DNA of 64,000 bases, taken from the IMG/VR virus record IMGVR_UViG_3300033153_015063, positions 1 through 64,000 of that record. One strand, given 5' to 3'. This document shows positions 1 through 61,437 of this stretch, piece after piece. The position numbers and the translations under genes are program-made. The notes below the pieces were generated by a model. That model was not told the DNA's origin. It ran no database searches and worked only from the letters and a program-made list of their open reading frames with translations. Position 1 is the first letter of the stretch. Each line of letters starts with the position of its first letter.

Positions 1-77
1 TTGTATTGTGTCTTTCCTTCCTCGTACTCGTACCTGTATCTGTTACCGGACCCTGGTGGAATCTCAACGGTGGTCAT
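1..77 (-). CDS. VEIPPGSG-module protein, copy 1 (partial, runs off window edge)
   Basis: Reverse complement from ATG at 77 reads MTTVEIPPGSGNRYRYEYEEGKTQY; TATA-like TTTATAA about 30 nt upstream; not in the supplied ORF track. Confidence 0.85.
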   Translation of the reverse strand, partial: MTTVEIPPGSGNRYRYEYEEGKTQY

Positions 78-15120: not shown

Positions 15121-15714
15121 ATGACCGTCGTCGAAATCCCTCCAGGTTCAGGGAATAGATACCGCTATGAATATGAAGAGGGAGCTACGGTTTACAAAGG
15201 CCCGGTCGGCACGGCCCCGGAGCTTTCGGAGGGGGAGTTCCTGGAGATGTCCCAGGTTGTTGGCCAGAAAGAACGAAAACTCAAGACAGCCTTCGAGATA
15301 CTGGACCTCGATGAACAAAACCGTTACGATACTGGTCTTGGGGATGTTGATTATGATGTGATGAGTGACCCACCACAGATAGCACTCTGGATGGGAATCG
15401 ACAACCCCCTATCAGATTTCGAGGAGGAAGGATATCATAGTGGTGAATATGAAGTGAGCCAGAGGGACCAGGACAAGATGGGTAAATACTTCGAGGAGAA
15501 CTACAAGGGCATCTCCTTCGACCCATCTCATCTCAACAAACAGTACATCTCTGTGTGGTTCACCATCGAACCGACGATGCCCCCAGATACCAAAAATGAA
15601 GATAAACTCCGGGAATGGTTTGATGGAGAAATGAATAGGGCTTTCCAAGACACCGGGGCCAACAGTTTCAGGAATGATTTTCTCATCTACGGAGAAAAAT
15701 TAGAGTTCGACTAA
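15121..15714 (+). CDS. VEIPPGSG-module protein, copy 2 (acidic unknown cargo)
   Basis: N-terminal module; TTTAAATAC promoter identical to that of copy 12. Confidence 0.85.
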   Translation: MTVVEIPPGSGNRYRYEYEEGATVYKGPVGTAPELSEGEFLEMSQVVGQKERKLKTAFEILDLDEQNRYDTGLGDVDYDVMSDPPQIALWMGIDNPLSDFEEEGYHSGEYEVSQRDQDKMGKYFEENYKGISFDPSHLNKQYISVWFTIEPTMPPDTKNEDKLREWFDGEMNRAFQDTGANSFRNDFLIYGEKLEFD

Positions 15715-18884: not shown

Positions 18885-19226
18885 ATGACCAGAATAGAGT
18901 TTGATGTCACCAGGGCAGACCTCGTTGGATCGAGTTTTATTGCCTTCCTGATTATGTCCATTGCTATAACAATGGATTTCCTTGGTATAGGTGGTGGGCT
19001 TCAATTCGACCTATGGATGTATGTTGTATTAATAATATTCCTAATACCAATCTCTTTGGTGATGTTTCAGACAATCGCAAAAATAACAAATGATTTTATT
19101 GCGTCTGGTATCTGGATAGCATTCCCCTGGATTTTCACTACCATAGCACCAAACCAATTGATTGATGTTGGTGTCTGGTTCGTAATGATAGGAACTCTTC
19201 TATGGTTCCTGTGGGAATCGGTCTAG
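18885..19226 (+). CDS. Small membrane protein
   Basis: MTRIEFD start after CGAACTCTTTAAATAC box; about 4 TM segments. Confidence 0.65.
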   Translation: MTRIEFDVTRADLVGSSFIAFLIMSIAITMDFLGIGGGLQFDLWMYVVLIIFLIPISLVMFQTIAKITNDFIASGIWIAFPWIFTTIAPNQLIDVGVWFVMIGTLLWFLWESV

Positions 19227-19828
19227 GAAAGGTAGGCGTTGACTTCGTAACGTCCTGTATCGTGCCTGTACCATGAGAGTACCAGGATGGAGTTTTTGAT
19301 TACCTTCCACTCTTCGTCACCTACATCGTCTTTGAATACCCTGGCCATCTCGATACGGGCCCTACCTTCTCTTCCCAACAACATCCCACTCCAACGAGTA
19401 TAATCCTCCTGAAGTGGGACCACCCCGTTATCTTCCATCGACTCAAAGATGTCGTCCAGGGGAATCGCACGATGATAGTGGCTGGTCAAAGGGTACAACT
19501 TATCATTGATTTTATTTTTGATGTTTTTTGGGAGAGTGACCTGGTTTTTAAAATCAGCCACCAGTGGCGGTTTGACCTCGAATTGCTCAAGAGAAAAGTG
19601 TTTTTTGCACCTGTTACACCATATCGTTTTACCCCGGCGAACGATGTCAGATGACCCACATTCGATACAGGTTGTACTCAGGACAACACCTTCACTCATT
19701 GCCTGAATGAAGCGTTCCTCATCCAGGGCTGGTGCATTGCCGACCGGCCCCTTGTAAACCGTAGCTCCCTCTTCGTAGACATACCTATAGCGGTTACCTG
19801 AGCCTTCTGGGATTTCAACGGTGGTCAT
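19223..19828 (-). CDS. VEIPPGSG-module protein, copy 4 (module, Zn ribbon, unknown domain)
   Basis: MTTVEIPEGSGNRYRYVYEEGATVYKGPVG; WCNRCKKHF. Confidence 0.85.
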   Translation of the reverse strand: MTTVEIPEGSGNRYRYVYEEGATVYKGPVGNAPALDEERFIQAMSEGVVLSTTCIECGSSDIVRRGKTIWCNRCKKHFSLEQFEVKPPLVADFKNQVTLPKNIKNKINDKLYPLTSHYHRAIPLDDIFESMEDNGVVPLQEDYTRWSGMLLGREGRARIEMARVFKDDVGDEEWKVIKNSILVLSWYRHDTGRYEVNAYLS

Positions 19829-19860
19829 CAAGGAATACAATGGGTGTTGAGTATAAAAGA

Positions 19861-23997: not shown

Positions 23998-24474
23998 TTA
24001 TGCACGCCTATCCCTTCCACTACCAACCTTCATCCTCTTCAAGAACTCCTCCTCCGTCAACTGAGGGCTATCCCCGACCGGGCCCTTGTAGATGGTTTTA
24101 CCGCCTTCGTAGATGTACCTGTATCTGTTGCCTGAACCTGGGGGAATCTCGACTATGGCACCTTTCACCTTCTCCCTCACTGGACGCTTCGTAAACTTTT
24201 CTCTCTTATGTTTTACCCACTTCTCAAGTTCGGCTTTACACTCCTCGCCATCCCAATCCATCGGTAAGATAAGGTTGCCCATCATATACTCATCATACCA
24301 TCTCTTATTCCACTCGCCCTGCTTACCATGTATCTCTGTCCCAAGATGCCTTCCAAACTCGTTGGGGTTGGCACTTCCATCGTGTGCTATAGCATGGAGT
24401 AGATAGTCCTCGTACTGATTGGGTGTCATAGCCCAGACGCCACCCTCTAACGATACATAGGTGTATCTTGGCAT
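23998..24474 (-). CDS. VEIPPGSG-module protein, copy 5 (module at C-terminus)
   Basis: Ends ...AIVEIPPGSGNRYRYIYEGGKTIYKGPVGDSPQLTEEEFLKRM... Confidence 0.8.
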   Translation of the reverse strand: MPRYTYVSLEGGVWAMTPNQYEDYLLHAIAHDGSANPNEFGRHLGTEIHGKQGEWNKRWYDEYMMGNLILPMDWDGEECKAELEKWVKHKREKFTKRPVREKVKGAIVEIPPGSGNRYRYIYEGGKTIYKGPVGDSPQLTEEEFLKRMKVGSGRDRRA

Positions 24475-24523
24475 ACATGAGGAAAGGCATAAGGTATTTA
24501 TATCCTTATCGCCATGCATCGTC

Positions 24524-24748
24524 ATGCCCCTGATACCTGAAGAGGTCCGTGAAAAAACAGGCCTGATGGTCGTCACCGCCCTGGGACTTTTCCTAGCACT
24601 CCAGTATTCTGTTGTTGTATCAGACATTTTCGAGGCTTATCTCCCAATGGGCGACAGTCTTATTATCCAGTTGGTTTATCTATTATTAATCACGATAATC
24701 GTGGTATACGCAGTCATCTTTGTTGAGAGACGTTTTGGTTCATCTTGA
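24524..24748 (+). CDS. Small membrane protein
   Basis: Two TM segments; divergent from copy 5 across one TATA region. Confidence 0.55.
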   Translation: MPLIPEEVREKTGLMVVTALGLFLALQYSVVVSDIFEAYLPMGDSLIIQLVYLLLITIIVVYAVIFVERRFGSS

Positions 24749-25963: not shown

Positions 25964-26464
25964 CTATCGTTTTTTATCTATTCGTCGGCGTGTCAAGCTT
26001 CTCGGTTTCAGGTCGGGTTCAAGTTCCCTGATAAGCACGTTCATCCTTTTCCCCTTCTCGGTGAGACCGCCCTGCCACACCCAATACCGCTCACCGCCAT
26101 GCGGGAACCTTCCTTCATCGGATTCCCAATCTACGAGTCCGTGCCGATACAGAACTGCCAACGTCCTGACGTTGAACAACTGCTGGTCGGTGGTCCCTAT
26201 TGTATGGATTGGTGCATTCGGATGAAGAGTCGAGAGCATGAGGACCCCTTCTTTCTGTGCATTCGAGAGTTTTCTGTATGTCTGGCGTAATTGTACGTCA
26301 AGCACGTCGATCCCCTTTATATCGTCACCAATCATCCCCTTCAAGAACTCCTCCTCCGAAAGCTCAGGTGCTTCTCCCACAGGCCCCTTGTAGACCGTAG
26401 ATCCACCTTCGTACTCGTACCTGTATTTATTCCCTGAACCCTCAGGTATCTCTACAGTGGTCAT
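25964..26464 (-). CDS. VEIPPGSG-module protein, copy 6
   Basis: MTTVEIPEGSGNKYRYEYEGG; CGAACTCTTTAAATAC promoter. Confidence 0.85.
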   Translation of the reverse strand: MTTVEIPEGSGNKYRYEYEGGSTVYKGPVGEAPELSEEEFLKGMIGDDIKGIDVLDVQLRQTYRKLSNAQKEGVLMLSTLHPNAPIHTIGTTDQQLFNVRTLAVLYRHGLVDWESDEGRFPHGGERYWVWQGGLTEKGKRMNVLIRELEPDLKPRSLTRRRIDKKR

Positions 26465-26622
26465 TGGAGAGTGATAGGGCCGGAGAGTATTTAAAGAGTT
26501 CGGGAGGTTTATTACCACCGTCATCATCTATTGACCGCCACCGAAGTCAATCATACCAGTCAATGAAGGCACTATACACTTCCTCTCCATCTTCCTTTTT
26601 CATCAAAGTTAGACCACTTTGT

Positions 26623-28444: not shown

Positions 28445-30166
28445 CTACTTTTTCACTCTATGTAGGGTCCCTTTCGCCTTTTTTAGGAGCTCAGTTGTCT
28501 GCTTCAACCTCTCCGTTCTGTTCTTAACTCTGTCGCTCATAATAAGGTCACGGTTTTCAACCAACACCCCGGCGAAATGAGCTGCGTTGGTAGCTGCGTT
28601 CCGGTCAGCGTTGAGTTGGCGGCCGCAGTCACCACATCTGAACCATGAGTGCCAGTGTTCCCAGAAGACGCCAGATTTCCCTACATCTCCATGTTTACCC
28701 CACCCACCACACACTGAACACCGTTTGCAAGCCAGCGTCAAAGGAATCTTCTGGATAACGATGTTGGGAATCTCTCTCAGCTTATATGTGAGTTGCCAAT
28801 CTACGATATGGAAAGGCCACCTATTGGCCATCCTCCTGATAAAGTCCGGTAGGAGTTCCTCCTCGCAACCTACCATGTTTTCCAATCTACCAGCTTTGTC
28901 CCTACTTCCGGTGAAATCGTGGATGCAGACCAGGATGTTCCCGCCGAGTTCTTTGAGTTTGTTGGCAATCATCCTGGTTGCGTTGTGTAGCTCGTGCCTT
29001 AGAACCAACGACGCTTTTGTGAGATAAATAGATGCCTTCTTATACTTGATAGAAAGGTTCTTTTTTGTTATCGGGCGTTGATCTTTTCCACGACGGGTTG
29101 CCTTGGATTGTCTTTCCGCATACTTATCGTCACTTGACTTCCAGTCACGAAGCATTTTCTTTCCTTTATGTATGTAATGAAACAACTCTCGGCCAGTTCT
29201 GGCATCCAACACAACCAACGACATTGGACGATAGATACCACCATGAACACCAACAATATAGTCTATTTCATCTTTTTTGTAATCATAAACGTCCACATCA
29301 ACGGATAGTGTGATGTGAAGCCACCACTTACCATCCTTTGGTATCAAAGTCCCTGAACCATGTTTCAGGATCGCTTCAAGTGTAAGCTCGCACCATCCCT
29401 CCTGATAGTGTTTCTTACCGAACTCTTTCAACACCCCGGATCGGTCCCTGATTTGTGATGACTCTACCTGGGCTGAAAAAATACCATTACGATTTATTAC
29501 TCCAACACTAAAGACAATCCCAAAATTATTACCGTTTTTCTTAATTTTGATGGACCTGTTATGCAGTTCAATAACATTATACTTTTCATAGCTTGGTCTG
29601 TTCTTGTTATTGACGGGTTTCCTTGGCCCTTTTTTGGTTGATGTTCTGTTCATAATCTCATCAACCAACTTTGTTTTAATATCTGGGATCTGTTTTCTGG
29701 CTATTTTAAGTAGGATTTTTCTATACTCTCCTATTTCCTTTTTGTATTTCTTATTTCCCTTTTTTCTGGGGTAAGCCGGTGGATTGGCTACTTGACTGGT
29801 CAACCATGGCCACCATAACTTATATTTGTTGAGTAGAACATAGCTATCGGTACGCCAGAGACGGCTTATCCAATTGGACAATGAGGAACGAAAGTTGGCC
29901 AGAACAACCGATACCTGTTCCTGAACAGTAGTTGATGAAAGTAGTGTGGTATTGATTTTCTGATCTTTATTAATTCCTTGAGAAAGACGTAGAATATGTG
30001 GCGGGAGTTTAGGAGACTTAGGAATCTTACTGCCTTTGTAGTAAGATGGTATCATAATTGATGCATAGTCAGCTACATCTCTGGCCTGCCCAAGGGCCAC
30101 AAACAGACGTTCAGAGTCCTCTTTCTTGAACGTCAATGGGACCTGGATTGTTCTGATTGATTTCAT
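28445..30166 (-). CDS. cas12: Type V Cas12f-like effector with non-canonical, probably inactive RuvC
   Basis: IRTIQVPL N-terminus, RuvC-I VGVHGG, RuvC-II CIHDF, Zn finger CSVC...CGDC, RuvC-III NADRNAA; array starts 2 nt after stop. Confidence 0.85.
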   Translation of the reverse strand: MKSIRTIQVPLTFKKEDSERLFVALGQARDVADYASIMIPSYYKGSKIPKSPKLPPHILRLSQGINKDQKINTTLLSSTTVQEQVSVVLANFRSSLSNWISRLWRTDSYVLLNKYKLWWPWLTSQVANPPAYPRKKGNKKYKKEIGEYRKILLKIARKQIPDIKTKLVDEIMNRTSTKKGPRKPVNNKNRPSYEKYNVIELHNRSIKIKKNGNNFGIVFSVGVINRNGIFSAQVESSQIRDRSGVLKEFGKKHYQEGWCELTLEAILKHGSGTLIPKDGKWWLHITLSVDVDVYDYKKDEIDYIVGVHGGIYRPMSLVVLDARTGRELFHYIHKGKKMLRDWKSSDDKYAERQSKATRRGKDQRPITKKNLSIKYKKASIYLTKASLVLRHELHNATRMIANKLKELGGNILVCIHDFTGSRDKAGRLENMVGCEEELLPDFIRRMANRWPFHIVDWQLTYKLREIPNIVIQKIPLTLACKRCSVCGGWGKHGDVGKSGVFWEHWHSWFRCGDCGRQLNADRNAATNAAHFAGVLVENRDLIMSDRVKNRTERLKQTTELLKKAKGTLHRVKK

Positions 30167-30179
30167 GTGACAGTAAGTG

Positions 30180-30420
30180 TGGGGGGCAAAAGCCCCCCTT
30201 GATAGATTTCGACCGCCCCGCACTTTTCCCCTAACTCCGAAGAGATTGGTGACTTATGTACAGTTGGATAGCAGTACTCTGGGCCCAAACTGATGCACAG
30301 CCTGGGGGAACATACAACAGTCCCTGTTACCGGCGGTACGCAACCCCGGATTTCCGGTCTGGGAATCGAACCCAGCCTGGTTGGCCCAATTGACAACCAG
30401 TTCCAACATCCGAACATCTG
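30180..30420 (-). ncRNA. Putative tracrRNA
   Basis: TATA at 30443-30450; hairpin CCAGGCUG-UGCAU-CAGUUUGG whose loop pairs with repeat AUGCA; UCUAUCAA (30199-30206) pairs with repeat UUGAUAGA; terminal GGGGGGC-UUUU-GCCCCCC hairpin. Confidence 0.75.
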
Positions 30421-38589: not shown

Positions 38590-39129
38590 TTACTCCCACG
38601 TTGCCTCCAGCTCACTCTTTATATCATCCCACTCAGCCATGTCATGGGTACTGTGGGATTGCCAACACCTCGACCCATCTTCTCCAATGTCGACGAGTAA
38701 TCCTTTGTTCTCCAGTAACGTGGAAATAGTACTGACACGTTCCATGCTAATACCGATATTTTCCCCTATTGTATCTTCATAGGCGGCGTAGGATTTGAAC
38801 ACGAACATAAGCACCTTCAACTCATCTGAATGCTCTTGTTCCTCTATCTCATACCTTACACGTGTAAAGGCTTCACTTCTCATTTTTGTTATTTTATCTC
38901 CATCTCTCAGGAAGTAAATCCTCGTCGTTCTTTTTCCCACTATCGGGTCCTTGACAGCATACACCTCTCTGTCAGTTTGTCTATTGTTCTCTGACAACAT
39001 TTTATTATCATGCTGAAGACAGCATTTAACGGCACCTTGCATTGTATTGTGGACCTTTTTGCACCAACCATCACGTTTACCGAGACAGACAAATCCAGAT
39101 TTCCTTCCTCTCTTACCCATATCACTCAC
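38590..39129 (-). CDS. Hypothetical protein
   Basis: Operon member. Confidence 0.55.
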   Translation of the reverse strand: MSDMGKRGRKSGFVCLGKRDGWCKKVHNTMQGAVKCCLQHDNKMLSENNRQTDREVYAVKDPIVGKRTTRIYFLRDGDKITKMRSEAFTRVRYEIEEQEHSDELKVLMFVFKSYAAYEDTIGENIGISMERVSTISTLLENKGLLVDIGEDGSRCWQSHSTHDMAEWDDIKSELEATWE

Positions 39130-39851
39130 CGATTAATTTTTTCGGACCTTCCCTCATTTTTCTTTGCGAGTTTGTTGATGGCCCACTGATATTCACAACC
39201 AGGACACTCAACATACAACCACTGACGTTGTGGAAAACCATCTACACATTGGCCGTCGGAGTGGTCATAGTACTTGAGTCGGTGGAAATCGAGCTCTGTG
39301 CCACAAGTTGGGCAATCTGGAGATTGAGTACGTTTCAATTCCTCAATCCAACCATCAAGAGTTAAATCGTATTTGGGAATTATAATATGTGGTTCAAAAA
39401 TATCAGTCTCTGGGAGACCCCTGACCGGCCCCTTGTACACGGTCTTGCCGCCTTCGTAGACGTATTTGTAGCGGTTACCTGAACCTGGGGGAATTTCAAT
39501 TACAGTCGTCCCTCTACATTTTATCTTTCTACATTTTTTGAGTATATAATCATTGATAACTCTATCCATCTGCCCCCTTGTATAACCATCGAGTGAGTCC
39601 CAGTCAACAGATATAAACACGACATCACTACTCATAACTTCATAATGTGTTTTACATAAGGGGCACCATTTTATTTTGCCTCTACTCCTTTGTTCACCAC
39701 ATGTATGTTTATGGTCAAATATTACTTTGTCAAATATCTTACAGAAAACGTCAGATGGGGCTGGATTTTTATGTTTCCGGTGCTTGGTCCATTGCTGAAA
39801 AAACAACGGAAGATTGAACTCATCAAGAGTGAATGTTAGATTCATCGGCAT
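39126..39851 (-). CDS. Protein with internal VEIPPGSG module (copy 7) between Zn ribbons
   Basis: TVIEIPPGSGNRYKYVYEGGKTVYKGPV at about 39420-39510. Confidence 0.8.
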   Translation of the reverse strand: MPMNLTFTLDEFNLPLFFQQWTKHRKHKNPAPSDVFCKIFDKVIFDHKHTCGEQRSRGKIKWCPLCKTHYEVMSSDVVFISVDWDSLDGYTRGQMDRVINDYILKKCRKIKCRGTTVIEIPPGSGNRYKYVYEGGKTVYKGPVRGLPETDIFEPHIIIPKYDLTLDGWIEELKRTQSPDCPTCGTELDFHRLKYYDHSDGQCVDGFPQRQWLYVECPGCEYQWAINKLAKKNEGRSEKINR

Positions 39852-44114: not shown

Positions 44115-46145
44115 CTACTTCTTACTTGGACAGTTCATATCAAGACACATATTCCAGGGTTGCTTCCCTTTTGTCTTGATTACAACCTTCGGCGTGTTGC
44201 ACGACACACAGATTGCCCCGGTAACCTTGATATCACCCTGCCCGGGGAGTGGAAAGGTCCTGCTACAACCTGGATAACCCGAACATCCCACAAACCTTTT
44301 TCCCTTCCTGGAACGGCGTATTTTCAGGTCCTTCCCACAATCAGGGCATGGACCAACCACTTCACCGGATTGCTGAGCCCCAGATCCCATTTTTTTACTG
44401 ATTTCAGGTGTCCTCTTCAGCAACCCATCAATGATTTTATCCAGATTGTCTCTAGAGACAGTCAACACTTTATCTTTCGTGTTCTGACCATCGGCAATCA
44501 TGTCCATGTCAACTTCCAACTCCTTTGTCATGGTAGGTTTACTGATACCAGGTGCAAAGTCCATCAGGAGTTCCGCCAGTGCCATTCCATCTTGAGTTGG
44601 TCGGATATTCCCCTCGACATACCCACGATTGTAGAGCTTTGAGATGATTTCTGCTCTTGTAGATTTGGTACCAAGACCTTCGTTCTGCATCACCGAAACC
44701 AATGTGCCCTGTGAGAACCTGGAAGGTGGTTGGGTAGTTTTTTCTATTAATATTATAGTATTAACAGGTATCTTCTCATCCAATTTTAAGGAAGGCAAGT
44801 GGTTTGGTGGACTCCATCCATATTGATACACGTCTCTCCATCCCATCTCAATAATCCTTGAACCAACAGTAATAAAAAATTCTCCATCAATATCGAGTTC
44901 TACTTTAGTATATTCGTAGACGTAGTTTGGCATCAGCGTCGCCAGGAAGCGTCTGACAATGATATCAAACAGTTCGCTTTCGTCACCATTCATTGACCCG
45001 AAGAGACCAGTTGGATGGATAGGTGGATGGTCAGTGGTCTGTATCTTACCTTTACTCGGTCTTATCTTCGGGAGTCCGAGAACTACGCCGGCAGCATCAT
45101 AGATAGAACTGGTTGTGGGATACTCATTGAAGAACGACATTGTAATGTTCTTCAGACCGATACCTATTGGATAAACAGTATTGTCAGTACGTGGATATGA
45201 ACATATTCCTTTGAGATAGATGCTCTCGGACACATCCAATACCTTCTTGGCGTTCCAACCCAACACCCCAGTTGCCAGTCTGACCAATTCGGTTGTATCG
45301 AGTGGTGGTGGTGCCCATGCTTCCTGTCTCGTGGTGTCAACGTCGGATACCACGGCCTGTTTCGAACTCTCGATTCTGGTAAATATGTCTCTGGCTACTT
45401 TTTTATCGGTAAACTTACCTTCTGTGTGCCAGGCATCGAAGTTGCGGTTCTTGGTCAGATTCGCCTTGATTTTCCAGTATGGTGTTGGTTTGAAGTTCAG
45501 TATCTTCTTCTCACGTTCAACGATGAGGCATAGCGTCGGACTCTGGACCCTACCGACAGAGAGAAAACCTTTCCCCCTTCGTCCAGTCGACAGAGAGAAA
45601 AACCTGGTCAGAACAGCACCCCACACCAGGTCCACGAACTGGCGGGTTTCCCCCGCTGACGCCAGATTGTAGTCGAGACCGACGAGGTTCTTGAAAGCCC
45701 TTATCACCTCGATATTTGTCAAAGATGAAAATTGAGCTCTTTCGATAGAGACTCTGGGTCCTACCATCTTCACGATGTCGATAGCCTCCTTACCGATAAG
45801 CTCTCCTTCACGGTCATAGTCAGTGGCCACTATAATTTTATTCACTTTCTTCCCCAACATCTTCAGAGTCGCCACAATCTCTTTTTCAGAAGGTATCACA
45901 ATCGGGTTGGCATAGATGACATCCTTCAGATTCCCCAACTCCCAACTCTTGTATTTCTGAGGATACTCAACCTTCACGATATGCCCACGCAGACCAACGA
46001 TGTAGATGGTGTCGTTGCCATCATCATACGAGAAGTAGTAGATTGCACCATTCTTTCTGGTGATGTATCTGTTGCTGGGGGAGAGTATGTAAGCCAGCCT
46101 CTTCGCAGCTTTGGATTTCTCTGCTATGACCAGAGTATCTACCAT
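44115..46145 (-). CDS. topA: DNA topoisomerase I (type IA, archaeal-like)
   Basis: IAEK, ATDYDREGE, GRVQSPTL, SYPRTD, GLGTKSTR, C-terminal Zn ribbons. Confidence 0.95.
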   Translation of the reverse strand: MVDTLVIAEKSKAAKRLAYILSPSNRYITRKNGAIYYFSYDDGNDTIYIVGLRGHIVKVEYPQKYKSWELGNLKDVIYANPIVIPSEKEIVATLKMLGKKVNKIIVATDYDREGELIGKEAIDIVKMVGPRVSIERAQFSSLTNIEVIRAFKNLVGLDYNLASAGETRQFVDLVWGAVLTRFFSLSTGRRGKGFLSVGRVQSPTLCLIVEREKKILNFKPTPYWKIKANLTKNRNFDAWHTEGKFTDKKVARDIFTRIESSKQAVVSDVDTTRQEAWAPPPLDTTELVRLATGVLGWNAKKVLDVSESIYLKGICSYPRTDNTVYPIGIGLKNITMSFFNEYPTTSSIYDAAGVVLGLPKIRPSKGKIQTTDHPPIHPTGLFGSMNGDESELFDIIVRRFLATLMPNYVYEYTKVELDIDGEFFITVGSRIIEMGWRDVYQYGWSPPNHLPSLKLDEKIPVNTIILIEKTTQPPSRFSQGTLVSVMQNEGLGTKSTRAEIISKLYNRGYVEGNIRPTQDGMALAELLMDFAPGISKPTMTKELEVDMDMIADGQNTKDKVLTVSRDNLDKIIDGLLKRTPEISKKMGSGAQQSGEVVGPCPDCGKDLKIRRSRKGKRFVGCSGYPGCSRTFPLPGQGDIKVTGAICVSCNTPKVVIKTKGKQPWNMCLDMNCPSKK

Positions 46146-46194: not shown

Positions 46195-46803
46195 CTACCA
46201 TCGAGGGATTCTTCTTGCGAAAACATCAGCTCTGGATTCTCTTCGATAGAAGGGGTCCACTTTCCCGTTGATATCAACTGACCGATATGTGATTGAATTG
46301 GTATAACCATCCGAGAAGACCTGTGCATTCCAGACGATACGGCTGTTCTTGACTGCTACAATCCCTACCCCCAACCCATTATGCTTACTCCATATGGGAG
46401 GAGATGTTGACTGATTACCTATGCTGACGTGTAGTTCGAGACCTTCCTTGATGCTTTGCTTTGTGAGTCGTCGGAGTTTGTTCACCAATGCACGGCCTTC
46501 TGCCGCTGCATATTTTTCATCTCTCTCTACAGCGATATGGGCCATGGCTTTTTTCATAGCATCCGTCTTGAGGATATCGGACACTTGAATTGGAGTATTT
46601 ATCGGCACATCCGATCTATCTTCCCATGTTATCTCTATAGATGGCTTGGATCTTTTCAATCCACCCATACTGAACATCTCCAGGAACTCCTCCTCCGAAA
46701 GCTCCGGGGCCGTGCCGACCGGCCCCTTGTAGACCGTAGCTCCCTCTTCATATTCATAGCGGTATCTATTCCCTGAACCCTCAGGTATCTCTACGGTGGT
46801 CAT
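46195..46803 (-). CDS. VEIPPGSG-module protein, copy 8
   Basis: N-terminal module; 5' flank shared with copy 4. Confidence 0.85.
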   Translation of the reverse strand: MTTVEIPEGSGNRYRYEYEEGATVYKGPVGTAPELSEEEFLEMFSMGGLKRSKPSIEITWEDRSDVPINTPIQVSDILKTDAMKKAMAHIAVERDEKYAAAEGRALVNKLRRLTKQSIKEGLELHVSIGNQSTSPPIWSKHNGLGVGIVAVKNSRIVWNAQVFSDGYTNSITYRSVDINGKVDPFYRRESRADVFARRIPRW

Positions 46804-46844
46804 CAAGGAATACAATGGGTGTTGAGTATATAAAGAGTTCGGGA

Positions 46845-51622: not shown

Positions 51623-51823
51623 ACCAACAAGAAACCTAACCATCTTTATAAAGATTCTTCATCTTTTCTCCGCTTCGAGCTCCGCAACCCGTGTGTTCAA
51701 TCGAGTGATGTGGTCAGTAACCAGTTACTTCTCTGTCAACCACTCACACCAAATGCAACGTTCGGAAGAGACACAGACTACGAACTCTTTAAATACATCC
51801 CATACTATTCCTTGGTCAATACT

Positions 51824-53297
51824 ATGACCATAGTCGAAATCCCCCCAGGTTCAGGGAATAAATACAGGTACGTTTACGAACAATCAAGTCAGGACACTGT
51901 CTACAAGGGGCCAGTAGGCCAGGCCCCGGAACTGGGAGACCTATGTAGTTGGTGGTGCGGTCCGGGACCTCGTGATGGGTCGGGAACCGAAGGACTACGA
52001 TATTGCAACATCAGCTACTCCCGGAGAGATAAAGGACATCTTCGGAGACGAAGTGGCCAAGACAATCGGTGGTGACGTTCACGGGACTGTCCTTATCAAA
52101 GACCCCCGTCGGGGAGGACGAGAACCGATGGAGGTTACGACGTTCAGAAAAGAAACCTATGGTGAGGCGGGCCGAGGTAGAAGGCCCACAGATGTAGAGT
52201 GGACCCGTTCGCTTGAAGAGGATCTCGGGCGTCGGGATTTTACTATCAACGCCATGGCCATGAAGACCGATGGAACTGTCATAGACCCCTACAACGGTAT
52301 TTCTGACATCAAAGCAGGTGTTATCCGGGCGGTGGGGAACCCAGACCTACGTTTCGATGAAGACCGTCTCAGGATGCTTCGGGCTGTCCGTTTCGCCAGC
52401 AGGTTTGGGTTCGATATCGAATCGGGCACAAAAAATTCGATCCAGAGAAACAAAGACAGCATCAACGAGTTACGGGCTGACGGACAACGTGTTGTGTCAT
52501 GGGAACGTATCAGAGGTGAGTATGACAAGGGTTTCTCACAACAGATGTTTGAGGCTGCCGCTGAGGTAGGGTTACTCGATGAAACCATACCAGAGGTCGC
52601 TGACCTGATTGGCTTTGAACAACGGAACCCCTGGCACTATGGCGACGTCTACGCACATACGATGGATGTGGTCAATGAGGGTATGAAGATGGAAGCACCG
52701 AAGGAGGTTAGGTGGGCATCTCTTCTCCATGATGTTGGTAAGATACAAACACGAACCATCGAAGAAAAGGAAGGCCAACAGATACATCGCTTCTTTGGGC
52801 ACGACAAGGTATCGGCTACGATGTCAGACGAGATACTGACCAAACTCAAATTCCCCAATGATGAGAAGGAATACATCAAGCTTCTGGTCTCGAAGCACAT
52901 GGTTCAACTGCCAGACGTCGATGACCCAGGTTTTGGTCGGGCGGTGGACCGATGGGAACGGAGGCTACAAGCAAAAGTGAAGAAGAACCCCAACAAATAC
53001 AAACCCAGGGTTGCAGGGGACCTGTTGATGCTTCGTAAGGCCGATGCCCTTGCCCATGTCGGTGGCGTCGAACTGGCTACCAATGTTGATGCGGTCCAGA
53101 GACACCGAGAGAACAGACAACCTGTGGTCGAGGTCAAACCAGTCCTGAGTGGCAAAGACCTGATAAACATGGGCTATGACCCTGGACCCAGGTTCAAGGA
53201 TATATTACAGTCTCTTACAGATTGGGAAGATGACCTTGGTTACAGACCAACGAAAGAGATGGCCCAGACCTTCATTGAAGAGAATTATGGTGAATGA
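51824..53297 (+). CDS. cca: VEIPPGSG module (copy 9) joined out of frame to class II CCA-adding enzyme with HD domain
   Basis: Module from ATG 51824; YVVGGAVRD, DYDIAT, RRDFTINA, EDRLRMLRAVRF, LLHDVGK in the +1 frame from about 51930. Confidence 0.85.
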
Positions 53298-54109
53298 GTA
53301 TGTCCATAGTCGAAATCCCTCCAGGTTCAGGGAATAAATACAGGTATGAGTACAACGCTGAGACCAAGGCTACAATCTACAAGGGGCCGGTCGGCACGGC
53401 CCCTGAGATGGGAGAAGAGGAGTTCATGGCGGCTATGGTGAAAAGCCCTGAAGAACGATATCCCGGTCTCTTCATGGACACAGATAAAGATGGTATCCCG
53501 AACGTCGATGACACTGAGCCACTTGTATATGGTGGTGGTTGGGTCGAAGAGATTTCACTCGCCGAGGAGATGAGAAAGATACTATCTCATAGAGATTCAT
53601 ATGATGAAGATTTACCAAAACTCAAAAGTGAGCTAAGGGGCATATCACCAGATGACGCTGAAATCAAAGGAAGAACAAAAAGTCTTTACTCTATAATAAA
53701 CAAACTACAACGTTCTCATCTCGATAAAATGCATGACATAATGGCCGCCAGAATAGTAGTTAATGATAACAAAGAACTTATGAGAGTGAAAGCGAACGTC
53801 GAGAAAAAATACAACCAAAATGTATTATCAGTCTGGGATTATTATAGTAATCCACTTGGTGGTTATCGTGCCTATCATTATATCATCGAAGGGTCTGACG
53901 GAAAAATGTTCGAGCTACAATTAAAAACAAAGAGATTATCAAGATTGAGCTCATTATCTCACACACCATACAAGAAAGGGGCACTCGACAAAGCGGAGTA
54001 TGGAAGATTGAGTGAACTGGCCGTCAGAGCTGATATGGAAGACAGTGATGCTATGAGTGTATTTGATGGGTACTCAGATGAAGAGTTAATTAATATGATA
54101 GAGAAGTAA
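53294..54109 (+). CDS. VEIPPGSG module (copy 10) fused to RelA/SpoT-type small alarmone synthetase
   Basis: GRTKSLYSIINK, DIMAARIV, DYYSNP.GGYRAYH, ELQLKT; DTDKDGIPNVDD Ca-binding-like linker. Confidence 0.85.
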   Translation: MSMSIVEIPPGSGNKYRYEYNAETKATIYKGPVGTAPEMGEEEFMAAMVKSPEERYPGLFMDTDKDGIPNVDDTEPLVYGGGWVEEISLAEEMRKILSHRDSYDEDLPKLKSELRGISPDDAEIKGRTKSLYSIINKLQRSHLDKMHDIMAARIVVNDNKELMRVKANVEKKYNQNVLSVWDYYSNPLGGYRAYHYIIEGSDGKMFELQLKTKRLSRLSSLSHTPYKKGALDKAEYGRLSELAVRADMEDSDAMSVFDGYSDEELINMIEK

Positions 54110-54185
54110 CCATCCTCCCACCACCTCCCACCTCTCGTTCCCAGTTCCCGAACTCTTTAAATACCCATCAGCTCATCCATAGCCG

Positions 54186-55247
54186 ATGACCACCGTTGAG
54201 ATTCCACCAGGGTCCGGTAACAGATACAGGTACGAGTACGAAAATGGTAAAACTGTGTACAAGGGGCCGGTCGGCAATGCACCTGAGCTGGGAGAGGTTG
54301 AGTTCCTGGAGATGATGGCTGGGGTGGGTATAGAGGACCCTGTAGTTGGTTGCCCTATTCATGGTGACACTGATATCAAAAAAGGTAGGGCAAGGTCAAT
54401 TAAAGAAGCCAAAAAAACATATACTGTAATTCCAGGAAAGAAATGTGGGATTTGTGGTGGTCCAATAGTAGAACTTCGTTCTGCACGTCCTGGTGTTGTA
54501 GTCGAACTTGGAAAGGGTGTTACAGACCCCAACATCAGAGACCTACCATTAAACGAGGACAGTACTGGCGACGAGGCGTATGTCATCGGAAGAGACAGAG
54601 ATACAGTGTATGTTTCCAGGCGTCGTCGTAAAAGTGACGGCTTGATGGAAGAGACCATCTACAGGATATCAGACCCCACAGGAAAACTCAAGTATGAATA
54701 TGGTGTAGGTGAACATGTCCCTTTCGACTACAGAAACCGGTATCAATTCTACTGGCAAAACCCCTGGTCTGGACAACATATTTATTATCCATTCAAAGAT
54801 GAGTTTGGTAGTCGTCGATACTGGATTACCAGTAAAACAACCAAGGAAGAGAAAGAAGTTCGCAATCAGTGGCTGACCACCCAGATGAGAACCGAAGGTT
54901 ACAATGTTATACAGATATGGCCGGACAGGGGACGTATCACAAAAGTGGAGATAAAAGAGTTGAAGAACGTTCTGAGAACAGGAAAGATGCATGGTTTCGA
55001 GTCAGATGAGTTCGATAAGGATTACAACAGGATGTGGGACGTTCTTGGGACCGATAAAGGGAACCGCATCGACAACATGTACAGGCACGTCTCGGACCTG
55101 GAGGGAGAGGATACGTCGAATGTGGTGTTCAGAATCCACTCTTCACAAAAAGAAGAGGCTGGAGAGTTCATGGATGCACCTTATGGATATTTTGAGAAGC
55201 GTTACCAAGATGGGATTTCCAAACCTGCCAGACACCTGGTTTTCTAA
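54186..55247 (+). CDS. VEIPPGSG-module protein, copy 11
   Basis: N-terminal module; CGAACTCTTTAAATAC promoter. Confidence 0.85.
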   Translation: MTTVEIPPGSGNRYRYEYENGKTVYKGPVGNAPELGEVEFLEMMAGVGIEDPVVGCPIHGDTDIKKGRARSIKEAKKTYTVIPGKKCGICGGPIVELRSARPGVVVELGKGVTDPNIRDLPLNEDSTGDEAYVIGRDRDTVYVSRRRRKSDGLMEETIYRISDPTGKLKYEYGVGEHVPFDYRNRYQFYWQNPWSGQHIYYPFKDEFGSRRYWITSKTTKEEKEVRNQWLTTQMRTEGYNVIQIWPDRGRITKVEIKELKNVLRTGKMHGFESDEFDKDYNRMWDVLGTDKGNRIDNMYRHVSDLEGEDTSNVVFRIHSSQKEEAGEFMDAPYGYFEKRYQDGISKPARHLVF

Positions 55248-55323
55248 TATGGTTGTATCACCTACCATCAACTATCAGCTATCAGCCTAATCTTTTTAAA
55301 CTCTCCAAAGGTTTCTGTGTAAG

Positions 55324-56157
55324 ATGGTAGTGAGTGAACGTAAAAACGTTATCTGGTTATCAGATTGCTGGAAGGACGAGTATCCAACCAGGCTAATCGG
55401 TGGTAAGGCGAAGAACCTGGGTATTCTGAAAAGGAACAGGTTCAACTGCCCTGATGGGTTTGTGGTTTCCACCTCAGTACAGGTGAGGTATGATGGGGAG
55501 AGGTTCGCTCATCAGGATCGTCAAGCGATCATGGATGCATATCACTATCTCACTTGCTATGTTGCCGTGAGGTCGTCTGGCGTTAAAGAAGATGGCGACG
55601 AGGAGAGTATGGCGGGGAAGTTCAGCACCTTTGTCTACATCTTCGGAGATACTAACCTACTACTCAATATCAGGAAATGTTATGAATCCGGTCCAGGGAC
55701 GCAGATGGCGGTTGTGGTCCAACGGATGGTGAACCCGGTTTGTGCTGGTGTGATGTTCACAACTTCTCCTTTTTCCTGGGATGATGGCAAAACTCTTATC
55801 GAGGGTTCATGGGGTCTCGGGTCCATCGTTGTGGATGGAATGGTGGTCCCAGATACTTTCAAATGCGATACAACTGGTATGGCAAAAAACGAAAAAGAAC
55901 TTGGTAAAAAGGCGATGAAGAGATTTCTGACAGATAGTAATATTGTAATGGGTTTACCAACAACAGCAGAGGAGCAAGAATCTTTTATACTCACAGATGT
56001 CCAGGTATTTGAATTAAGTAGGATAGGAAAGAACATCGAAAAGGTGTATTCACGTCCTATGGACGTCGAGTGGTTATTGGATGAAGACGGTATGTTCCAT
56101 ATCGTCCAGGCCCGTCCGCTGACAACGATTCTATCGGAATTTTCGATGTCTGGTTGA
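55324..56157 (+). CDS. Stand-alone PEP synthase/PPDK N-terminal ATP-binding domain
   Basis: GGKAKNL, PDGF, AVRSSG, SMAGK, VVQRMV, GLG..VVDG, DVEW, QARP; no His-swivel or pyruvate domain. Confidence 0.85.
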   Translation: MVVSERKNVIWLSDCWKDEYPTRLIGGKAKNLGILKRNRFNCPDGFVVSTSVQVRYDGERFAHQDRQAIMDAYHYLTCYVAVRSSGVKEDGDEESMAGKFSTFVYIFGDTNLLLNIRKCYESGPGTQMAVVVQRMVNPVCAGVMFTTSPFSWDDGKTLIEGSWGLGSIVVDGMVVPDTFKCDTTGMAKNEKELGKKAMKRFLTDSNIVMGLPTTAEEQESFILTDVQVFELSRIGKNIEKVYSRPMDVEWLLDEDGMFHIVQARPLTTILSEFSMSG

Positions 56158-56337: not shown

Positions 56338-57057
56338 CTAATCGCTTTTCTCGATGATTAACTGAAGACCATAGTCTCCATCGGCCTCGGAATTTCCAAA
56401 GAAAAATTGTGCTGAGTAACCGTCGGGGACTGAGAACTCTGTGAGATTGTTGAGGCCACCAGCGACTCTGTCCAGCGTCGGTTCGATAAGGTCGCCCCAT
56501 ACTTCAGGGCCGTATTGTACACCATATCCAGGACTCAATCCAGGGCCTTCGATGTAATCTTCTAATTCCTTTTCGGGAAAGAGGCCCTCAAACTCGGAGA
56601 TGACCTCCCCTGGCATATATGTTCCAGCGGAACCTGATGCGACAGTCTCTATCCAGTACTCGGCCCTCCCATCATCGAACTCGTATTCCTCGAAATTGGG
56701 TCCTATGACCTCGTTGAGTGCTGCCTGAGCGGCCATTTCTGCCCGCTTGATGCCATTATGACCATAGGCTTTCAGAGCTGATGCAGCATCTTTGGCCTCT
56801 CCCATGCTGGAGAAATATTCACCGGCCACGAACATGTTGGCAGCGGTCTCGATATCAACATCCTTGGCGATGATGGAGAGTGCTTCCAGGTCAGTCTTCA
56901 CCCTTGGATTCATACCACTCCGCTCCATCATCTCCAGGAACTCCCCCTCCGAAATCTCCGGGGCCGTGCCGACCGGCCCCTTGTACACAGTCTTGCCGCC
57001 TTCGTAGACGTATTTGTAGCGGTTACCTGAACCTGGGGGGATTTCGACGACGGTCAT
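56338..57057 (-). CDS. VEIPPGSG-module protein, copy 12
   Basis: N-terminal module; 5' flank identical to copy 2. Confidence 0.85.
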   Translation of the reverse strand: MTVVEIPPGSGNRYKYVYEGGKTVYKGPVGTAPEISEGEFLEMMERSGMNPRVKTDLEALSIIAKDVDIETAANMFVAGEYFSSMGEAKDAASALKAYGHNGIKRAEMAAQAALNEVIGPNFEEYEFDDGRAEYWIETVASGSAGTYMPGEVISEFEGLFPEKELEDYIEGPGLSPGYGVQYGPEVWGDLIEPTLDRVAGGLNNLTEFSVPDGYSAQFFFGNSEADGDYGLQLIIEKSD

Positions 57058-57501: not shown

Positions 57502-57930
57502 CTATGAAGATGAAAGATGCTCTTTGATAGATTCAACGTGGATTTCTTTTTCCTGAAGGGCCGATAGACGTGGAGGGATACGATAAGCAACCTTAATAGG
57601 TCGAATTTTTTTCAATCGTGTAAAATTCCTTTTGAAGTCGCCCTTGACCAGATCCCCATTTTTATCATACCCCCAGATAAGGAGTTTCGAAGGGTCAGGG
57701 TGCCTGTTCTCCTTATCGACATAGACGATGATTGGGTCGCTCCAGAGGTTCTCCTGATACTCGTATGCCAACAGGGTAGCCTCGCCCCTTCCCTTTCCTA
57801 TAACATTCAAGAACTCCTCTTCTCCCATCTCAGGGGCCGTGCCGACCGGCCCCTTGTACTGTGTCTTGCCGCCTTCATATTCGTAGCGGTATCTATTCCC
57901 TGAACCTGGAGGGATTTCGACGACGGTCAT
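57502..57930 (-). CDS. VEIPPGSG-module protein, copy 13
   Basis: N-terminal module; CGAACTCTTTAAATAC promoter. Confidence 0.85.
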   Translation of the reverse strand: MTVVEIPPGSGNRYRYEYEGGKTQYKGPVGTAPEMGEEEFLNVIGKGRGEATLLAYEYQENLWSDPIIVYVDKENRHPDPSKLLIWGYDKNGDLVKGDFKRNFTRLKKIRPIKVAYRIPPRLSALQEKEIHVESIKEHLSSS

Positions 57931-57976: not shown

Positions 57977-60355
57977 TTAGTAGATAGTAAGCCCTTGGAC
58001 CTTTTTCTTCGCAATATATACGTATAGAATTTTTCCATCTACCAACTTCTGGCCACCTCGCTTAATCTCCTCAGCCTTCTTTAACACTACAGATCCATCT
58101 TCTTTAAAGAGATAAACTTCATCGTCGGGTCCTATGCCCCATACCCCGATAAGTTTTTTCTTCTGTGCTTGTGGTACTATTTCAAGTACCTTACCGACCA
58201 ATCCCCTGTTCCTATCTGAAATCTCTTCAATAGGACATTTCCTCCCCCACCCAGTTGTGGAGACCATCAACACCTCTTCACGTTCCGATACAACCGACGC
58301 CCCCCGGCACTCTGTATCAACCTTGATTCCCCTCACACCAACACCATCCCTGTTCGTAGGCCTTATATCTCCAATTGGATAAGATACGTATCTGGCAATT
58401 TCATCAACGTGGATAATCCGTGTATCATCACCTGGGAACCTACCGAATCCATACGACAGATCCGCATCTATAAGGAAATCTCCATATCTGATAGTCAACA
58501 TCTTGGTACTGGCCCGATTGCTGTTCAATGAAGATAACTTGATTGCTTTGACTTTTCCTGATCGTAGAAAGAAATAAACTTTTCTATCATCGAACTCCTC
58601 TATGGCCATAACCTTTCTGAAAATCTCTTCGCCACAAACCTTCAATATCTCATGGAACGGAGTTCCTTTCCCTTTTTCACTCAGAGGTATGTCCCATGCC
58701 TTTACCCGGTGAGCTCTATCATCGGTAAAGAAAAGGATTGTATCGTGAGATGAACACTGTACCATATCCACCAATCCCTTCCCCTGGGTTTTCTTTTTCC
58801 GCCAACTTGACAGATAGTCTTTTTTTATCCCATCAGACGTTAATGATATAATTATATCACGATCTTTTACCATGTCTGATTTTTCCACATCCACCGGTTT
58901 TTTAATCAAACTCGATCTTCTGGACGATGTAAACACGTCCCTCATGTTATTGATTTCATCTACTATAAGCCTCAATATTTTCTTATCATCGGATACTGTA
59001 ATGGAAAGTGCTTTGATATCGACTGAAAGTTCTTTGACCTTCTCCTCCAACTCATCAACCTCGAATCTCGCCAACCTTTTGAGAGACATTTGCATCACGG
59101 CTTTTGCTTGTGTCTCACTGAAACCCATCTCGACCAATGAATAGATCAACTCCTTATCGGTTGTGCAGACCTTCACCTTCTCTATGATGGTGTCGATGAT
59201 AGGAAGTGCCTTCATCAACCCAACCTTGATATTGTAATCATAGGTTTTCTTTTCGAGTTCAAACTCTACCCGACGCTGGACCACCGACATCCTGTGTTCG
59301 ATCCACCGCTGAAACAGGTGGTAAAGAGAGACCTCTATCGGTATCCCACCATCCAGTACAAGGTTGAGATACGAGTACGTCTGGTCAAGTGATGTCCTTT
59401 TCAGTATCTGGTTCCTCACAACCTGAGGTTCGTCTCCCCGTTTGACCTCGATGACTATACGAAGTGTGTCACTACTCTCATCACTGTAATCTGCAATACC
59501 AGAGTTTTTCTCCTCAGCCAACTTCTCCAGTTGCCCGAACAGTTTCTCCTTTGTAAGGTTGTAAGGTAGTTCTGTGATGATGACCCTGTTCTTTTCCGTC
59601 CTGATTTTAGCTCTGACGTGAAACGAACCTCGGCCTGTCTCAAAAATCTTCCGAAAGTCCCCATAGACCTCACCACCTGTAGGAAAATCCGGGCCACGCA
59701 TGAACATCATATAACCATTCACAGCCTCAGAAACCCGCTGTTTTTCGTCGCTCAACGACGCTAGACCATCCATGTTATGGATATGCCAGACCGCTGCGGT
59801 TATCACTTCCTGGATGTTGTGTGGATACATCCTGGTCGCCATCCCAACAGCAATCCCTTCGGTCCCATTGATAATTAGATTAGGAACCATCGCCCCGAGT
59901 ACCGTGGGTTCTTTGAGAGACCCATCAAAGTTAGGAATGAAATCGACGTACTGGTTATCAGTATCTTCGAGTAGGTACAAGGAATATTTTGAAAGGGTAG
60001 CTTCGGTGTATCTCATTGAAGCTGGTGCATCTGGGTCATTGGAACCGAAGTTACCCTGACCTATCACCATAGGCTCCCTGACTTGCCAGTCCTGTGCCAT
60101 CCTCACCATAGTAGAGTAAACGGACTGGTCACCGTGTGGATGCCACTTTCCCATCACATCTCCAACGATACGAGCTGACTTGACAGGTTTTCCGCCCGGT
60201 TTCAGACCCAACTCCATCATCGCCCATAGAATACGCCGTTGGGCCGGTTTCAGCCCATCTCTGACATCTGGTAGGGCCCTGACCAGAGAAATCATCGAGT
60301 AATCAAGTAGGTTCTTTTGGAGAAGGTCGATGATGTCCCTACCATTTATAGACAC
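57977..60355 (-). CDS. gyrA: Type IIA topoisomerase / DNA gyrase subunit A
   Basis: [29 protein letters not shown] catalytic Tyr, GPDFPTGG, C-terminal pinwheel-like repeats. Confidence 0.93.
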
Positions 60356-60858: not shown

Positions 60859-60947
60859 CCGGGGGTGGCTGAGTGGCCGAAGGCGAGGGGTTTAAATCCC
60901 ATCGGCGTCGCTGCCCATCGTGGGTTCGAATCCTGCCCCCCGGACCA
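60859..60947 (+). tRNA. tRNA-Leu(UAA), CCA encoded
   Basis: CCGGGGG/CCCCCGG acceptor, GAGTGG D-loop, TAA anticodon, long variable arm, GGTTCGAATCC, discriminator A; TATATAAA upstream. Confidence 0.8.
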
Positions 60948-61005: not shown

Positions 61006-61437
61006 TTAATCCATCAAGTAAAGTCTGGACCTGAGGTCATTGACAAACACTTCAGGATTTCTTTCGATGAAAGTGGGCCAATCAGGAGTATCACTACTCT
61101 GGCCGTGACTCATGGCATAGTAGATGGCCTTTCTTCTCTTATCACTGGATGTATCTGGACCGATAATACGGGCAAGTGAGAACAACTCATCCATGGCCAT
61201 CGCTTCAGTTCCCATCCATCTATCAGTTTCGATGACCTGGCCGTTGACGATGTATGGCCTGATATCGTATTGTACCTCAACAACATTCTCGGCTGGAGAG
61301 ATAGTCATGGCGTAGATAAACTCCCCCTCGCTCATCTCAGGAGAATCCCCGACCGGCCCCTTGTAGACCGTAGCTCCCTCTTCATATTCATAGCGGTATC
61401 TGTTACCTGAGCCAGGAGGGATTTCGACGGTGGTCAT
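61006..61437 (-). CDS. VEIPPGSG-module protein, copy 14
   Basis: N-terminal module; 5' flank shared with copy 6. Confidence 0.85.
   Translation of the reverse strand: MTTVEIPPGSGNRYRYEYEEGATVYKGPVGDSPEMSEGEFIYAMTISPAENVVEVQYDIRPYIVNGQVIETDRWMGTEAMAMDELFSLARIIGPDTSSDKRRKAIYYAMSHGQSSDTPDWPTFIERNPEVFVNDLRSRLYLMD

Follow-up and report, generated by a model that had tools for sequence, protein, structure and literature searches.

Introduction

In phage T4, the internal proteins and Alt carry a capsid targeting sequence of about 10 residues that is cleaved by the prohead protease, and the internal-protein products are loaded into the head, injected, and act on host defences. Toxic small alarmone synthetases (toxSAS) modify the CCA end of tRNA, a modification that HD-fold SAH enzymes reverse (10.1101/2021.04.30.441581), and jumbo phages commonly carry a CCA-adding enzyme as an RNA-repair gene, with a proposed role in tRNA 3′-end repair (PMC7824862). 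Here we describe an island of four genes at 51.8-56.2 kb in the first 64 kb (hereafter the window) of virus record IMGVR_UViG_3300033153_015063. The island encodes a CCA/HD enzyme, a small RelA/SpoT homologue (RSH) synthetase, an orphan protein, and a lone ATP-grasp domain, and three of its genes are headed by a module, or tag, of about 45 residues that recurs throughout the genome. This tag family is the novel part of the finding. The orphan RSH in a probably archaeal virus is a secondary novel element, and the CCA/HD and PPDK_N enzymes in themselves are ordinary jumbo-virus accessories.

The T4 capsid targeting sequence may offer the closest analogy to the tag. In both viruses a short conserved N-terminal sequence is shared by several unrelated soluble proteins, some of them enzymes, that are encoded by small, fast-evolving genes. 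Here, however, the shared signal is a folded domain of 45 residues on about 39 proteins; no capsid, protease, or cleavage has been identified, and packaging is a role that we infer. The island also recalls toxSAS such as FaRel2, PhRel2, and CapRel in that a single-domain synthetase in a mobile element overlaps a gene with an HD-fold phosphohydrolase domain. It differs from them in that the synthetase is closest to RelA-type domains, its neighbour is a frame-broken CCA-adding enzyme with an HD domain of the CCA/HDIG type rather than an SAH or known antitoxin domain, and the N-terminal tag and calcium loop of the synthetase are unknown in toxSAS. With the CCA-HD enzymes of jumbo phages and of the E. 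coli type, the first gene shares a class II head and a C-terminal HD domain; in contrast to them, it resides in a virus with archaeal-type promoters, has the module ahead of it in another frame, and lacks a start of its own.

Results

A plus-strand island in a large virus genome

The virus record is 242,596 bp long (GC 46.6%) and its ends overlap, as in a circular assembly; it has direct terminal repeats according to IMG/VR and is complete according to CheckV. By a simple open reading frame (ORF) call, there are about 310 genes, of which three quarters lie on the minus strand. Amid minus-strand genes, the island stands out as four co-oriented plus-strand ORFs across which the GC skew is locally reversed (Table 1). 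A sequence-only reading of the window had described it as a class II CCA enzyme with an HD domain, a small RelA/SpoT synthetase whose start is overlapped by the CCA gene, a third module protein, and a lone PPDK_N domain, and our profile searches agree with this description throughout. That reading had also placed the module on both enzymes. This holds for the synthetase (residues 3-49); in the CCA gene, the module is one base out of frame, and the fourth gene has none.

An N-terminal module shared by unrelated soluble proteins

In the module, a conserved core of the type VEIPPGSGNRYRYEY is followed by a turn, then by a strand that ends in YKGPVG, and finally by an acidic helix. The window contains 14 copies of it, and the whole genome about 39. 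Using ORF 3, which the family scans had left without assignment, we searched 1.84 billion representative proteins exhaustively and obtained 137 carriers, each matched only through residues 1-50 and almost all at their own N terminus. The carriers are 72-365 residues long and about 30 of them come from this genome. Eighteen short contigs of three metagenomes carry the module, with up to three tagged genes in succession, and one metagenome contig is syntenic with the gyrA neighbourhood of the window (GyrA fragment 60% identical, module gene adjoining). No copy was confirmed in IMG/VR or in 185,579 GTDB genomes.

The payloads that follow the module are mostly unrelated to one another, as 128 of them fall into 111 groups. 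Only about 10 of the 137 carriers contain a Pfam domain, namely AAA_5 (four members), a Ham1 inosine triphosphatase (ITPase), three DUF families, and the RelA_SpoT domain of the island. A transmembrane-like segment was found in none of the 128 payloads, as against 59 of 277 untagged ORFs. The tag does not mark nucleotide-transfer enzymes; its genome copies, about 39 in number, are distributed over mostly unrelated soluble payloads.

Several observations suggest that the module is maintained as a protein. Among the copies of the genome, 60% of synonymous sites differ and 15% of non-synonymous sites (pS 0.60, pN/pS 0.25), Tyr, Gly, and Pro positions are invariant across the 137 proteins of several metagenomes, and two independent AlphaFold runs yield three strands and a helix with a confidence (pLDDT) of 85-96 over the tag. 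The combination of purifying selection and a confident predicted fold indicates that the tag is a selected, folded protein domain and not merely repeated DNA. The presence of such a domain on many unrelated soluble proteins that are small and fast-evolving leads us to read it as a targeting or docking label. The copies also recombine, as shown by a mosaic in which 43 copy pairs share exact blocks of 45-115 nt, with borders lying anywhere between codon 45 and a point 45 nt ahead of the ATG. Patchwork copies, for example at window 15121, 46803(-), and 57057(-) and at genome 86549 and 211566(-), suggest frequent gene conversion. In several copies (window 17642, 24147, and 39494), the ATG is lost or the module is internal or terminal to a longer ORF.

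Fold searches with the module model gave a best Foldseek E of 1.4 (an AP2 domain over 26 columns) and a best VIA Z of 2.3, which we treat as no match. Weak Pfam matches of single copies (Actino_peptide, 6 members; RHS_repeat, 4; TumE, 4; Pyrophosphatase, 3) were rejected as unconvincing. Residues 2-20 of the module resemble a stretch of the type IEIPKGSxNKYEY in the N-terminal strands of family I inorganic pyrophosphatases (PPases). When the module profile was compared with the PDB, PPases were five of the seven best matches (best E 0.0016), with an hhalign probability of 75% over 19 columns. The likeness is nevertheless confined to 19 residues, and one PPase active-site Glu is replaced; the module holds no full PPase domain with an Asp-rich active site, and PF00719 (PPase) has no match in the genome at E ≤ 10. 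The resemblance may be a lead on the origin of the tag rather than a sign of membership in the family.

The CCA gene and its frame break

The PolyA_pol head domain of ORF 1 (PF01743, E 6.8e-34) covers model positions 1-126 of 126 and is accompanied by an HD domain of HDIG type (PF01966, E 2.3e-7) and by weak RNA-binding and tRNA_NucTran2_2 matches. The best PHROG family is the phage tRNA nucleotidyltransferase phrog_2244 (3e-70), and the nearest solved structures are the bacterial CCA-adding enzymes 6ibp (3e-45) and 1miv (2e-39). In the alignment to 6ibp, the GGxVRD and DxD motifs are present as GGAVRD and DYD, and EDRLR is aligned to the EDALR of 6ibp, conforming to the EDxxR of motif D. This motif is the nucleotide-selecting template of class II CCA enzymes. 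NCBIfam CCA models reach 7e-65, yet every equivalog cut-off is missed (219.5 bits against a cut-off of 290 for the top model, PRK13299, and 152 against 306 for the pcnB subfamily), so that the enzyme may add CCA, A, or poly(A). The gene is present in a single copy, and no close relative of it was found in IMG/VR. The virus encodes four tRNAs (Leu-UAA, Pro-UGG, Lys-UUU, and Ala-UGC), and only tRNA-Leu has an encoded 3′ CCA; the other three give a CCA enzyme an ordinary job.

As assembled, the gene cannot be read from the module into the enzyme. The module frame runs from the ATG at 51824 for 83 codons and ends at 52075. The CCA frame is +1 relative to it, is closed upstream by a TAG at 51915-51917, and contains no ATG, GTG, or TTG before 51972, which is already past the strand with GGAVRD, the essential first motif. 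Hence there is no intact reading frame with a start codon upstream of the head domain. Position 1 of PF01743 falls at 51939, directly behind the last module codon. The sequence was therefore built for a module-CCA fusion, which in the assembled form needs a +1 shift. Removal of one G from the GGG run in CTGGGA (51934-51936) would join the two frames.

The same 114 nt occur a second time in the genome, without the usual promoter box, ahead of an orphan ORF of 157 codons that is open only in the +1 frame and from the same TAG. A long +1 ORF follows the module in just these 2 of about 39 copies. The orphan has no Pfam or PDB relative, and an impression of an ADP-ribosyltransferase-like motif in it was dropped on that ground.

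The break may be due to recoding, to an error in a repeat that was collapsed, or to true decay that gene conversion has spread. We give a substantial, if not quite even, chance to the view that there has been no decay and that an assembly or consensus error in the 114-nt repeat, or programmed +1 recoding, hides a full module-CCA fusion in vivo. The +1 frame is open from within the module in both identical copies (459 and 157 codons) and in no other, the head domain starts at the codon next to the module, and with one G fewer the junction would resemble those of other copies. A recoding event would, however, have to occur at a stretch in which we see no canonical +1 slippery motif, rare codon, or stop codon, and an indel error would be unusual in this assembly, in which ORFs of up to 1627 codons are intact elsewhere. 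As a test case, the two identical and equally frame-shifted module copies offer a compact way to tell recoding from decay propagated by gene conversion.

Promoters and the probable host

A TATA-like box is found 22-28 nt before the ATG of ORFs 1, 3, and 4. More generally, many genes, tagged or not, have a GAAC box with a TATA-like octamer whose end lies 21-27 nt upstream of the ATG, and the GAACTCTTTAAATA form of the island, a BRE-like GAAC followed by a TATA-like sequence, also precedes topoisomerase IA, methylase, and membrane-protein genes. Across the genome, the frequency of TATA-like words is highest 29-31 nt ahead of start codons. No Shine-Dalgarno sequence is present in the leaders, which are poor in G, and sigma-70-type sites occur at chance level with no enrichment. 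This combination of box, spacing, and leader matches the architecture of leaderless transcripts in archaea. The module is conserved together with the leader and promoter upstream of it. C-rich direct repeats of the CCCACC / CCTCCCACC type lie on the coding strand just upstream of several module promoters, for example at window 54100-54150 and genome ~86470-86510.

We consider it quite probable that the host is an archaeon. The alternative of a bacterial host, in which a class II CCA enzyme and an RSH would be ordinary jumbo-phage accessories, draws on the phage-like, bacterial-type genes of this virus (the phrog_2244 CCA enzyme, gyrase A and B, topoisomerase IA, a 5-hydroxymethyldeoxyuridine (5-hmdU) DNA kinase, TROVE, and CobT/AAA_5), on the failure of Pfam to find the archaeal replication markers PCNA, PriS, and MCM in the genome, and on the tailed-virus origin of the cluster nearest to the synthetase in the ESM Atlas. 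It is rendered unlikely by the fixed position of the TATA-like box with GAAC just upstream, by the leaders, and by the lack of sigma-70-type sites above chance. The viral GyrA, at about 35% identity to all cellular matches, carries no host signal. The enzymes are themselves unusual for archaea, as the sequence-only reading had remarked: among our control genomes, the class II CCA head domain occurs in 10 of 10 bacteria and 0 of 4 archaea and RelA_SpoT in the 10 bacteria and, among the archaea, only in Methanosarcina, in line with the rarity of RSH proteins in archaea (Atkinson 2011, PMC3153485).

An orphan RelA/SpoT-type synthetase

The 271-residue product of ORF 2 consists of the module (residues 3-49), a thrombospondin-type-3-like calcium loop (residues 63-74; window 53480-53515), and the synthetase domain (residues 126-228; nt 53669-53977). 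Its ATG at 53294 overlaps the CCA stop at 53295-53297 (ATGA). Further thrombospondin type 3 repeats, 17 in number, occur beside a PKD domain in another viral protein of 1130 residues (genome 91337-94729). RelA_SpoT (PF04607, E 7e-18, 65.3 bits against a Pfam gathering threshold of 27) is the sole family on ORF 2, with no hydrolase, TGS, or ACT domain, which is the architecture of a small alarmone synthetase. The catalytic residues R127, K129, K137, D148, R153, Y191, H195, E207, and Q209 are invariant against seven cellular RSH domains. This alignment and E. coli RelA show the GRxK...S...K, D..A.R, GY...H, and ExQ residues to be in place, and residues of ORF 2 align to E. coli RelA G251, D275, Y319, E335, and H354. 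Judging from these residues, the synthetase is very probably an active pyrophosphokinase. The EXDD/RXKD acceptor motif is not present, with SVWD standing opposite the EFDD of RelA, and the acceptor may be either a nucleotide or an RNA.

Among solved structures, the relatives of ORF 2 are ranked as E. coli RelA (5e-12), other long RSHs, RelP (6e-5), RelQ (6e-3), and CapRel (7ztb, 0.46), and no other toxSAS chain was found at E ≤ 10. A tblastn search against phage records returned weak matches of 27-35% identity, mostly to host-type relA, and no phage toxSAS record; neither comparison places ORF 2 in a toxSAS subfamily. A word search among proteins of 0.55-1.75 times its length recovered ORF 2 itself and two module-only matches, and IMG/VR scans gave no close relative of the synthetase domain or RSH alignment. 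Its PHROG match is the unannotated phrog_4773, and the nearest ESM Atlas cluster consists of tailed-virus RelA_SpoT proteins (0.94). By these comparisons, the synthetase appears to be an orphan viral lineage whose nearest solved structures are RelA-type and not CapRel.

This placement bears directly on the mechanism proposed in the sequence-only reading, in which a toxSAS-like synthetase pyrophosphorylates tRNA 3′-CCA ends and the coupled CCA/HD enzyme unblocks or rebuilds the end, as an attack/repair pair; the two might equally be toxin-antitoxin-like. We regard such a pair as improbable and find no direct support for it. The ATGA overlap of the two genes, the basic synthetase core (pI 9.4), and the only PADLOC match, which assigns ORF 2 to the candidate defence RSH family PDC-S33 (E 3.6e-17), are what would be expected of it, as is the precedent of toxSAS enzymes and the SAH enzymes that reverse them (10.1101/2021.04.30.441581). 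The RelA-like affinity of the synthetase is not, and neither is an HD domain of the HDIG type of CCA enzymes rather than HD_4 or the RSH hydrolase type that undoes tRNA pyrophosphorylation, nor a CCA gene without an in-frame start. Jumbo phages widely carry CCA enzymes without an RSH (PMC7824862), and no relative of either gene was found in the word, phage-record, and IMG/VR searches. Since about 37 further unrelated genes have the tag as well, its presence at both the CCA and the RSH gene is no evidence that the two work together.

The third and fourth genes of the island

ORF 3 has no family in Pfam, NCBIfam, PHROG, or PADLOC. A zinc-ribbon-like CxxH...CxxC motif follows its module, and an ESM Atlas search with a poor model (pLDDT 0.41) gave nothing above chance. 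ORF 4 lacks the module and consists of PPDK_N only (PF01326, E 9e-53), with phosphoenolpyruvate (PEP) synthase 8a8e as the best PDB match (E 1e-30). PEP synthase and rifampin phosphotransferase likewise combine a PPDK_N ATP-grasp with a swivel domain that has a conserved His. ORF 4 differs from them in that the ATP-grasp and the swivel His are not in one chain; the virus encodes the phosphohistidine motif in a second protein, about 140 kb away, in which the swivel domain follows 240 N-terminal residues of unknown type, and a PEP/pyruvate-binding barrel was not seen. This swivel protein is likely the trans partner of ORF 4.

Other genes of the virus

The genome contains 11 methyltransferase genes (N6/N4 DNA), a 5-hmdU DNA kinase helical domain (E 3.7e-48), and a thymidylate-synthase-like protein of 619 residues (genome 209190-211049). 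The viral DNA is probably heavily methylated with hypermodified thymidine. A TROVE (Ro60-like) domain protein (E 3.5e-44), two resolvases, CobT/vWA-like proteins, and an AAA_5 ATPase are also encoded. Jumbo phages are known to have such modules, which belong to RNA quality control or are of MoxR type. A TnpB/Cas12f-like nuclease is represented by a protein of 592 residues (window 28445-30223, minus strand) that has a Cas12f1-like TNB domain. Pfam and other scans recognised no HK97 capsid, terminase, prohead protease, or reverse transcriptase in the genome.

Table 1. Positions of the island genes, module copies, promoter-like boxes, and other features; coordinates refer to the window unless the genome is named.
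Feature	Position	Strand	Remarks
Promoter-like box GAACTCTTTAAATA (BRE-like GAAC + TATA-like)	51782..51795	+	28 nt before module ATG of CCA gene
Module copy of CCA gene	51824..51937	+	38 codons, ATG to CTGGGA; own frame stops 52073-52075
Frame junction of module and CCA frames	51932..51941	+	read from sequence
ORF 1, class II tRNA nucleotidyltransferase (CCA-type) frame with C-terminal HD/HDIG	51918..53297	+	PF01743, PF01966
ORF 2, module-tagged small RelA/SpoT-type pyrophosphokinase, 271 residues	53294..54109	+	PF04607
Promoter-like box GAACTCTTTAAATA	54150..54163	+	22 nt before ORF 3 ATG
ORF 3, module-tagged orphan protein, 353 residues	54186..55247	+	no family
TATA-like TTTTTAAA	55293..55300	+	23 nt before ORF 4 ATG
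ORF 4, stand-alone PPDK_N ATP-grasp, PEP synthase / rifampin phosphotransferase type, 277 residues	55324..56157	+	PF01326; untagged
Second module copy	genome 124542-124655		100% identical over 114 nt to that of CCA gene
PEP-utilizers swivel phosphohistidine protein, 327 residues	genome 197258-198241	-	
Neighbouring tagged orphan gene	56338..57057	-	convergent with island
Neighbouring tagged orphan gene	57502..57930	-	beside gyrA
Tagged gene	15121..15714	+	
Tagged genes	17151-17669, 19223-19840, 25964-26527, 46195-46815, 61006-61437	-	
Tagged gene	23998-24627	-	module at C end
Tagged gene	39126-39851	-	module internal
Tagged gene	1-77	-	runs over record ends
Gyrase A gene	57977-60355	-	
Gyrase B gene	11760-13721	-	
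Topoisomerase IA gene	44115-46145	-	
Four tRNA genes	60859-60947; genome 165438-165508, 175583-175654, 175969-176043		

Discussion

The explanation that we favour, tentatively and at somewhat under even odds, treats the island as auxiliary payload genes that are clustered and transcribed together and that draw on a delivery or docking tag employed across the virus. Three of its four genes would begin with a tag domain of three β-strands and a helix that serves as a common label on about 39 otherwise unrelated, exclusively soluble proteins, either so that they are packaged into the virion and co-injected or so that they gather at a single structure of the virus or the host. The CCA/HD enzyme and the RelA/SpoT-type enzyme would not be a dedicated pair but two of many payloads. 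The former may complete or repair tRNA 3′ ends, and the latter may move pyrophosphate from ATP to a nucleotide acceptor, giving an alarmone-like product that reprograms or shuts down the host. The ATP-grasp protein and the separately encoded swivel protein could form a split phosphotransferase. A looser reading, as an anti-defence or host-takeover kit, would be compatible with the data.

Several points weigh against this explanation. With no capsid, terminase, or prohead protease recognised, there is no structural anchor for packaging into virions. The CCA gene may be dead, given its broken frame in this assembly, and the synthetase has SVWD where EXDD/RXKD would indicate its acceptor. The fold of the tag has no significant match. 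The missing PCNA, PriS, and MCM and the many genes typical of bacterial jumbo phages (class II CCA, gyrase, 5-hmdU kinase, and TROVE) count against an archaeal host, and the promoter box, being shared with topoisomerase and methylase genes, does not define a class of virion genes.

A module without function at the protein level, in which promoter, leaderless start, and the first 40 codons travel together by intragenomic recombination as a portable expression cassette, would account for the exact blocks with shifting borders typical of gene conversion, the co-conserved leader and promoter, and the two identical copies out of frame before unrelated ORFs, yet it is very doubtful given the strong amino-acid purifying selection despite near-saturated synonymous divergence, the invariant residues across metagenomes, the confident autonomous fold, the lack of membrane proteins among the payloads, and the use of the same promoter by genes without the module.

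To return to the delivery or docking tag, we put forward more speculatively, and as an unlikely outcome when taken as a whole, that large, probably archaeal, viruses possess an effector-delivery system not seen before, in which the 45-residue module acts as the address label. Some 40 soluble proteins, among them an alarmone-type pyrophosphokinase, a tRNA-end repair enzyme, an ITPase, and MoxR-type ATPases, would then be loaded into the particle or onto one intracellular structure, with new payloads joined by recombination at the 3′ border of the label.

If the tag is a delivery or docking signal, it would provide a catalogue, readable from sequence, of the effectors of a large virus, most of which are of unknown function, together with a handle for pulling down the common partner of the tagged proteins. 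An RSH enzyme in a probably archaeal virus would bring pyrophosphokinase chemistry to hosts that largely lack a stringent response, raising the question of its target.

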